DNA of 64,000 nt from positions 62,001-126,000 of the forward strand of contig NW_026889767.1 of NCBI RefSeq assembly GCF_033153115.1, written 5' to 3'. This DNA comes from Saccostrea echinata. Taxonomy: Eukaryota. The position numbers and the translations under genes were made by a program. This document shows positions 39,981 through 42,900 of this stretch, one piece after another. The notes under the pieces are model-generated. The model ran no database searches and was not told where the DNA came from. It saw only the letters and a list, made by a program, of their open reading frames with translations. Each line of letters starts with the position of its first letter. Within the stretch, counting starts at the first letter, position 1.

Positions 39981-42900
39981 TCAAGGATGAGCCGCTTTTT
40001 GTTGGTTAATCCAGGATAGGAAGGAACTGACACGTGTATACACTCCAGGGGCGTTCCTATCGCCACACCCGTATCCCCAGGACACGATTCCCGCCAACTT
40101 CCAAACTCCATCCTTCTTACAGACTAAAGGACCGCCACTGTCTCCCTGTAAAATGTTAAATGACACATTTATTTGCTAGAATTATCTGTGTATGTAATCT
40201 TAAAGTGATTTTTATATATGTTTTTGTCCTTCATTATTACTGTTACATTTCCAGATGCATCAATTTCTTCTAGGTTGATTCAAAGATTGTGTATCAGTTG
40301 TTTCAGACATCCTTTTTTATATGCAAGAGAAATAAATAAATTCGCATAACTGCATAGTTATTTCGTTCTGTCAGAGAAACGGATAATTGCATAAAAAAGC
40401 TAAGTTTATCATAATAAATTTTCCAATATGAATACCACTTTTTTATACTGAAGATTAGAACAATATTTCCACGATAATATTTCACTTAACCCTGTCCTCA
40501 AAGTTGCATCATAATTTAGAAGAATTGATTCACTAAATAAACAGGCACCCTTTTTAAAAGCAAAGCATCCACGAACAAAAAGCAATGCGAGAAAAACTGT
40601 GGAATCTTTCGAACGACTTAAAGATGAAACATATTAAATTAAAAGCAAGGGAAAAAAGACACCAAATGGACATATCAAGCTTTCAAATCTTACAAGATAC
40701 ATGTTCCTGTCACAAAATTTTAAAACAAGGAAGAATTTGCAATACCACTGAAATGAAATTCTCATATGACCAAGACCAATTTGTATGACAACCACATGAT
40801 CTTACAAACCTGACAGGCATCTTTTCCGCCTGCTCTCAGACCTGCGCAGATATTACTGATGTGCACGTGAGATCTACCCAAGAAGTACTGACACTGGGAG
40901 TTTGTCATTGTCGGTACATCAACCTTTCTTAAGTACTGGGCGCCCGGGGCATGACCGTTGTTATCTGAATATCAAATGTAACTTTGTTTATTGACGATCG
41001 ATTTGAACACCCCCTGACCTTTAAGTCACCTGTTTTTCTTGCAAGCAAAGAATGAAATAGCAAGTAAGCTTGGTCATTAATTATTAGGATTCACCATGTT
41101 TGGCAAAATTGAGCTACACAATTAAGTTATCTGTAACATAATTACGCCTATCACTTAAACAGTATCACCTAGTCTCTAAAAAATTTGCATTCAATATAAC
41201 GAAGCTAAAAAGGACAATAAATTATTATACAATGACACTCTTGCAGAGTATGGGATAATACTGCAATTGTGAGGAAGAGCCCGCTGGAAACATCAGGTAC
41301 AACTGTACTACCCCTTGCTGAACAAAACTGAACTTATATGAAACAGGAATAATGCAACACTGCATGAAAATACCGTCAGCCCTCATATCGACCAGTGCTC
41401 AAACATGTCCATTGTACAGAGATTTTGCTAACTGAAAGCAGTATACAGAAGCGACTGAAATTGTAGAACTTACTGGACAATATCCTCAAATTATTTTTAC
41501 TTTTCCTTAAGTCTAAATAAAAAGAAAAATCAAAAACATATTTTTTAAACTTGTATTATAGCAGCAAACTACTAACTTGCACGTGTTAGGATGTGTAAAC
41601 TACATAAGAAGCACTATTACTGTGCTGTTTCTTCCATCATCTCGGACAAAACCTTCGTAAATTTTATCCGTTCTTCCTGATCACTTCCTAAAACGTCTGC
41701 TATAACCTTCTGCATACAGGGGCGTAGCTTGACTTTAAATTTTAGTGAGGCAAAACCATACATGTAGCAGCAAGAGGGCTGGGGCCGCCTTAAGCCCCCA
41801 GCAGGTTCCGGGTGGTATCATGGGGGGGGGGGCACTCCGACAGAAAATGGAGTTGGGGGTTTTAAAATGCAATGAAATTTCATTTGTTGTACTGGCTTCT
41901 TTTTTTTAAGACTTCAGCATGATACTACATATTGTAAAAGAATGTAAAAGAGTTAATAAATATGTTTACTAAAACTTTTGAAACAGTTAAACGTGAAAGC
42001 GCATCTTATTAAACTTTGCTTTTATTTCTTTAAAACTTCAATTTAACATTATAGAACTGCTTAAAATGTTAAAAGAAATACCATTAATTTTACGTATCAT
42101 CTGCAATGTATTGTTGATTATGGGAAGGGGTGGTGGTGGTGAAAAATCTAGTGAGGCAGTTGCCTCATTGCCACAATGGAAGCTACGCCCCTGGCATATT
42201 TTCGTTAAAACTTCTACTAGTGACTTTGATAAACTAAAATTAAAATACTTACCCATTGTAACTGCAATCTTTATACGATAATCGATATATTTTCTTTGCC
42301 AGAGTAAAAGGACTCTACAGAAAAACATATTTTCGTTACAGTATCTACCATTACCTGACAAGCGTCTTTGCCACCCTGACGTAAACCTGCGCAGATATTA
42401 CTATTGTGAACAGCATTTCCAAGAAAATATCGACAGTTAGAGTTGGTCATTGTCGGTACATCCACCTTATGCAGATATCTGGTTCCTGGAGCACCGTTTT
42501 TATCTAAGGAGCAAGATGTGGTAAAGGCAAAACAGGAGAAACATTTTGATATTAACGTGACTTGATTAATGGTGTAAACGAGTTTTCCCTGCTATATGTA
42601 GAACTGCATACAAAGTATCTTCATTTTAAAATTATGTTGGTGCGTAAGGTATATTCTCAGATATTGCATGTTTAAAATTGTTTGTAGAGATAGTTTTGAA
42701 ATACTTGTATGCACGTACTCGTATTTAATTAATATGTTCTAATCATCCTGTAAAACAAAGATCTTATTATTCACTTGTCGGAAGTATTTTGTGCAGGACA
42801 ATTAAAAAAAAAATGTATCATTCAAAGACTTTACAATCAAATCAATTAAAATGTAAGCCATGTAATGTAGTACACTGAAAAAGTCTTTCAAAATGCAAAT

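Follow-up and report, generated by a model that had tools for sequence, protein, structure and literature searches.

The window, a 64,000-nt stretch of a Saccostrea echinata contig (NW_026889767.1), holds a cluster of three protease genes, which we call A, B and C. Mapping the RefSeq protein for gene C (P0272) onto the window gives seven coding exons on the minus strand. Exon 1 (49738..49795) carries the start codon and the signal peptide, matches residues 1-19 of P0272 exactly, and ends at the donor A/GTAAGG, while exon 2 (48247..48429) encodes a six-cysteine N-terminal domain plus a linker and is 100% identical to residues 21-81. The S1 domain starts in exon 3 (46618..46703; residues 81-109) at the activation site HTK/IVGG. 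Exon 4 (46405..46493; residues 110-138) supplies the His57 region (TAAHC), and exon 5 (43780..44045), which ends in phase 1 with the donor GTAAGT, spans the sequence from the Asp102 region (NDIAL) to GWGATYF. Two alternatives for exon 6 follow: an upstream one of 149 nt, 6a (42355..42503), and a downstream one of 155 nt, 6b (40810..40964), which is the one used by P0272. Exon 7 (39981..40145), the last coding exon, runs from GDSGGP (Ser195) to the stop codon. With 6b, the coding exons total 1002 nt, enough for 333 aa plus the stop, as in P0272; with 6a, the product is 331 aa, the same length as isoform X2 of the Crassostrea gigas ortholog. Intron 5 also contains a (TC)n microsatellite of about 50 nt, at about 43600-43655 of the window.

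The gene C protein is a trypsin-like S1A protease. Pfam assigns it to PF00089 (Trypsin) with E = 1e-66, it has His57 (AAHC), Asp102 (NDIAL), Ser195 (GDSGGP) and Asp189, and the nearest solved structures are those of plasma kallikrein, TMPRSS13, prostasin, enteropeptidase and TMPRSS2. The earlier note described it as a clip-type protease, and that description does not stand: hmmscan against Pfam at E-values up to 1 returned Trypsin, DUF1986, Trypsin_2 and one chance match, with no CLIP domain among them. The N-terminal six-cysteine module, which ends in CC, resembles a clip domain only in outline and matched no Pfam family.

Exons 6a and 6b are clearly homologous to one another. Their peptides (50 and 52 residues, respectively) are 79% identical over 47 aa (tblastn E about 1e-21) and their nucleotide sequences about 71% identical, and the similarity breaks off at the splice sites. 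Exon 6a is bounded by the acceptor CTCCTTAG and the donor GTAATG, and exon 6b by the acceptor ATATTCAG and the donor GTTTGT. With one base carried over from exon 5, each stays open as far as KDACQ and ends in phase 0. The description from which we started, of two intact, AG/GT-bounded, stop-free, phase 1-0 homologs of exon 6 with lengths of 149 and 155 nt, is thus exact to the base in both coordinates and peptides, and Cys168, Cys182, Cys191 and Asp189 (within KDACQ) can be read in each of the two peptides, as it had stated.

We checked the frame logic of the pair exon by exon. Since 149 and 155 are both 2 mod 3, including both exons or neither shifts the frame and leads to an early stop: if 6b follows 6a, the frame that it inherits reaches a stop at codon 12 of 6b, and if exon 5 is spliced straight to exon 7, a stop comes after 8 codons of exon 7. 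The catalytic serine is therefore found only in transcripts that contain exactly one of the two, which bears out the earlier note's argument that one, and only one, must be used. The products of double inclusion or of skipping would be truncated and would lack the catalytic serine, double-inclusion transcripts would presumably be subject to NMD, and each transcript encoding an active enzyme would carry either 6a or 6b.

RefSeq already contains such a pair of isoforms for each of three Crassostrea species. The 6a peptide, used as query in an exhaustive search, led us to a full-length member of the family (P0012), and a search with P0012 and inspection of the resulting clusters then gave the pairs. 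The pairs are XP_034321131 (X1, 333 aa) and XP_034321132 (X2, 331 aa) in C. gigas, XP_052695148 and XP_052695149 in C. angulata, and XP_022306804 (X1, 332 aa) and XP_022306805 (X2, 330 aa) in C. virginica. They belong to the same gene family as S. echinata gene C and vary at the same exon position; the names given to these orthologs (tryptase, tryptase-2, CTRL-1, prostasin-like) are automatic. In the C. gigas and C. virginica pairs, which we compared by alignment and script, X1 is of the 6b type and X2 of the 6a type, and outside the exon 6 segment the two isoforms are identical over 281 residues in C. gigas and 280 in C. virginica. The two-residue difference in length between X1 and X2 follows from the 155 versus 149 nt of the exons. 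An old C. gigas gene model, K1RP38 (P0282), runs from 6a through some intron sequence into 6b, of which it includes a part, and so shows that the 6a-then-6b order is also present in the C. gigas genome. Two other public models related to these proteins look faulty in different ways: P0278 (XP_062606564), a 947-aa "TMPRSS9-like" protein of S. cucullata that clusters with these 333-aa proteins, may fuse neighbouring genes, and in P0015 an inserted repetitive sequence separates ACQ from GDSGGP.

S. echinata differs from Crassostrea in two respects. Only the 6b form is modelled for gene C (P0272, named "prostasin-like", carries no isoform label and contains 6b only), and there is an extra paralog, gene B, that has lost 6a. 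The transcript-derived Crassostrea ORFs in the two protein clusters (P0012 and P0268-P0271, about 22 contigs) are likewise all of the 6b type. When the 6a segment of the C. gigas isoform X2 was used to search cluster representatives, no full-length 6a-type proteins turned up beyond the X2 cluster, and among spliced fragments carrying 6a the large protein collection returned none, only genomic ORFs that run on into the intron. Because the transcript-derived ORFs are all of one type, 6b is probably the major form and 6a a minor or restricted one. That S. echinata itself uses 6a is our inference from the Crassostrea RefSeq models and from the conservation described below.

The whole three-gene cluster was assembled twice in the S. 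echinata genome (923 Mb in 425 contigs), once on the contig that includes the window (C18) and once at 5.385-5.410 Mb of a second contig (C27; region L009). Colinear apart from kb-scale indels, these copies share 95-98% identity, rising to about 97-99% in the exons of gene C, and both are annotated in RefSeq; XP_061180738 and XP_061185385 are identical proteins. They look like alternate haplotypes (a haplotig), or else a very recent segmental duplication. On C27, as on C18, every splice site is intact and 6a comes first, upstream of 6b, and across exons 5, 6a, 6b and 7 the copies differ at 10 positions (2 of them in 6a and 5 in 6b), all synonymous.

This duplicate bears on the suggestion that the tandem pair is an artefact in which two genes or two haplotypes were collapsed into a single locus. 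The fact that the locus is held twice does indicate that haplotypes were handled imperfectly in the assembly, but C18 and C27 independently place 6a upstream of 6b within one intron-exon framework, the 71% nucleotide identity of the two exons is far beyond allelic divergence, and the same order is found within one gene in Crassostrea genomes. Contradicted on all three points, a collapsed assembly is hardly credible as an explanation, and we rejected it.

The 6a-6b intron is 1390 nt long in the window and, from the exon coordinates derived for it, 907 nt long in the C27 copy. Within the longer version lies a 477-bp high-copy element (41717..42193) with 14-nt perfect terminal inverted repeats, CAGGGGCGTAGCTT and AAGCTACGCCCCTG (pair I10). 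A first look found 232 candidates for this element in the genome, those that were scored being 91-99% identical. Since it is present in the C18 intron and missing from the C27 intron, we regard it as a recent or polymorphic MITE-like insertion, and since the C27 intron does without it, it is irrelevant to the splice switch. A gap between blast blocks in intron 5 marks a further stretch of about 400 nt that is found in the C27 copy (L009:3213-3613) and missing from the window, probably another insertion polymorphism.

Both exons have been under constraint. Between 6a and 6b, dN is 0.166 and synonymous sites are saturated, which implies an old duplication with both copies constrained for most of the time since. 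The S. echinata 6a peptide is identical to those of C. gigas X2 and C. virginica X2 at 48 and 47 of 50 positions, respectively (94-96%); 6b is identical at 44-46 of 52 positions (85-88%) to its counterparts in the other genus. The whole protein, at 283 of 334 positions (85%) between genera, is less conserved than 6a. A tree of the 50-residue segment is largely unresolved, and we can therefore date the duplication only to before the Crassostrea/Saccostrea split; in that tree, the annotated segment from Pinctada groups with the 6b type (support 94/99). Together with the frame arithmetic and the isoform pairs of the orthologs, strong purifying selection on both copies upholds the central claim of the earlier note, that a single gene carries two homologous exons as alternatives of which a transcript can use exactly one.

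The neighbouring genes provide a useful comparison. Paralog B, also on the minus strand, retains exons at 26704-26441, 22967-22813 and 21517-21356, including its 6b, but its 6a is represented only by a pseudo-exon (25816..25946, minus strand) with a 5′ deletion, no Cys168 and an in-frame stop. This relic is 79% identical to the 6a of gene C, with 16 gap columns and 7 or more indels, and so resembles the introns, which are 68-78% identical between B and C, rather than the retained exons, which are 88-92% identical with no gaps. Having decayed to intron-like divergence, the B copy can serve as an internal neutral control for gene C. Paralog A (12229-16732 of the window), the third protease of the cluster, has one homolog of exon 6, at 14992-14849 and 40% identical to 6a. 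Paralog A has no second exon-6 copy, and the exon duplication is therefore specific to the B/C lineage.

We used this control to weigh the possibility that S. echinata splices in 6b only, so that the 6a of gene C, though still intact, is an unused relic like the 6a of paralog B at an earlier stage. A relic of this kind would agree with the S. echinata RefSeq model, in which 6b alone appears, with the transcript-derived ORFs of its relatives, all of the 6b type, and with paralog B, which shows that this lineage is able to lose 6a. Since the B/C duplication, however, the unused B copy has drifted to 79% identity and acquired 7 or more indels and a stop, whereas the 6a of gene C is open, has kept its splice sites, matches C. 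gigas 6a at 48 of 50 residues, and differs between C18 and C27 only synonymously. Had the 6a of gene C long gone unused, it would be expected to resemble the B relic, which it does not, so that any disuse would have to be very recent. We therefore rejected this explanation, which we consider unlikely.

We also looked for other means by which exclusivity might be enforced during splicing. Steric hindrance between the two exons is ruled out by the length of the intron that separates them, and incompatibility between U12 and U2 splice sites is ruled out because all of the donors are U2-type GT. A scan for intronic complementarity of the kind that could support docking/selector pairing gave only short, AT-rich, imperfect inverted repeats besides the transposon ends. 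One of these (pair I6) consists of 18 nt just upstream of the 6b acceptor (40978-40995) that are 83% complementary to 43289-43306 in intron 5. Such a pairing would loop out 6a, although by our rough estimate the complementarity is at the level expected by chance. The polypyrimidine tract and the donor are both better in 6a than in 6b, yet 6b seems to be the commonly used exon, which suggests, speculatively, that 6a is either actively repressed or restricted to particular cell types.

Whichever exon is used, the two isoforms share the catalytic triad, Asp189 and Ala190, all of the disulfide cysteines, and every residue outside the exon 6 segment. The differences are concentrated in surface loops. 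Residues were numbered after bovine trypsin, with Cys168, Cys182, Asp189 and Cys191 as the anchors of our alignment. In sequences from three species (6a) and five species (6b), 8 alignment columns separate the two types without any shared residue. In the autolysis loop, 6b is one residue longer (an extra His or Asn) and the T-R of 6a is replaced by A/S-Q. On either side of Cys168, 6b has Gln where 6a has Asn and Arg (N167Q and R169Q). The 170s loop gains an Arg in 6b and changes from Ala in 6a to His or Asn, and at about position 186 the Gln of 6a becomes Ala or Ser. These type-diagnostic columns place the differences in the autolysis, 170s and 186 loops, where the earlier note had located them.

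In the S1A fold, the autolysis loop borders the S2′ side of the active site, residues 174-175 lie on the S3/S4 side, and position 186 is at the rim of S1. It is established for this fold that these loops influence extended specificity and contacts with inhibitors. Swapping them would thus be likely to change the enzyme's preference for extended substrates or for inhibitors. In contrast, because Asp189 and Ala190 are the same in 6a and 6b, a P1 preference for Arg or Lys should be common to both forms.

The sharing of S1 determinants (Asp189, Ala190 and the Gly-rich wall) and of all cysteines is also what one would expect if both exons were alternately spliced but the resulting proteins were functionally equivalent, the switch being tolerated noise or a means of modulating expression only. 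Against this, each type has kept its own residues at eight positions in the two to three genera compared, and conservation is higher in 6a than over the full protein. Functional equivalence would also lead one to expect homogenization of the two copies or loss of one of them, as happened in paralog B. We judge equivalence to be very unlikely. The explanation that we prefer, and in which we have considerable confidence, is that the 6a-6b pair arose long ago by tandem duplication of an exon in a trypsin-like S1A protease that oysters secrete, that the two exons are spliced on an either/or basis, and that exchanging them is likely to shift the extended preference of the enzyme. As a splice switch it is real, old and fairly ordinary, and its 6a exon is unannotated in S. 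echinata.

The earlier note had regarded this arrangement as unfamiliar for a bivalve clip-type protease, and that assessment holds only in part. In the literature that we searched, we found no paper that describes mutually exclusive exons within the protease domain of an S1 enzyme or the switch in this particular gene, and a homologous-exon swap within the S1 catalytic domain appears to be uncommon. The arrangement is nevertheless not new in databases, where RefSeq already models the orthologous isoforms as X1/X2 in three species of Crassostrea, and events of this class are well known.

Related devices are known on both sides of the protease-inhibitor relationship. The reactive-center loops of several insect serpins (Manduca serpin-1 exon 9, Drosophila Spn42Da and Anopheles SRPN10) are encoded by mutually exclusive homologous exons that retune specificity; those cassettes act on the inhibitor side and offer up to a dozen alternatives, whereas gene C encodes a protease and offers two. 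Alternative splicing of the MASP1 gene yields MASP-1 and MASP-3, serine proteases with different specificities, but there the entire protease domain is exchanged through alternative sets of 3′ exons, whereas gene C exchanges one internal homologous exon.

More generally, substitution events between tandem duplicated exons (mutually exclusive homologous exons) have been catalogued for human genes (PMC8373072, PMC9741552). Like 6a and 6b, the exons in those events are adjacent, homologous, in the same phase, ancient and under purifying selection, and the core fold is kept; in the oyster case, by contrast, the exchanged segment belongs to an S1 catalytic domain. A parallel within enzymes is coq-2, in which an exclusive pair of exons, 6a and 6e, found in helminths, annelids and molluscs, remodels the enzyme core and changes substrate choice (PMC7434440). 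Oyster RNA-seq is among the data listed for that work (PMC7434440). Both coq-2 and gene C thus have a mutually exclusive pair in the enzyme core, molluscs included. However, coq-2 encodes an unrelated enzyme, a polyprenyltransferase, and the function of its pair was demonstrated genetically in C. elegans (PMC7434440).

A bolder version of our preferred explanation, which we offer tentatively and think somewhat doubtful as a whole, is that the switch has been kept since before the Crassostrea/Saccostrea split as a protease-side counterpart of the insect serpin cassettes. It would retune the loops on the S2′ and S3/S4 sides while leaving S1 unchanged, its use would be regulated by tissue or by challenge, and it would stand in a trade-off with gene duplication, in that paralog B dropped its 6a once the gene had duplicated.

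For S. echinata, these observations have an immediate practical consequence: read mapping to the current gene models would miss the 6a isoform, or would misassign its reads among gene C, gene B and the second copy of the cluster, and the duplicate assembled cluster will split or double-count reads. For the protease family, the pair amounts to a compact natural experiment on the loops that set extended specificity, in which evolution has marked eight candidate positions. The same window also shows the aftermath of a gene duplication, in which gene C keeps both alternatives and gene B lets one of them decay.
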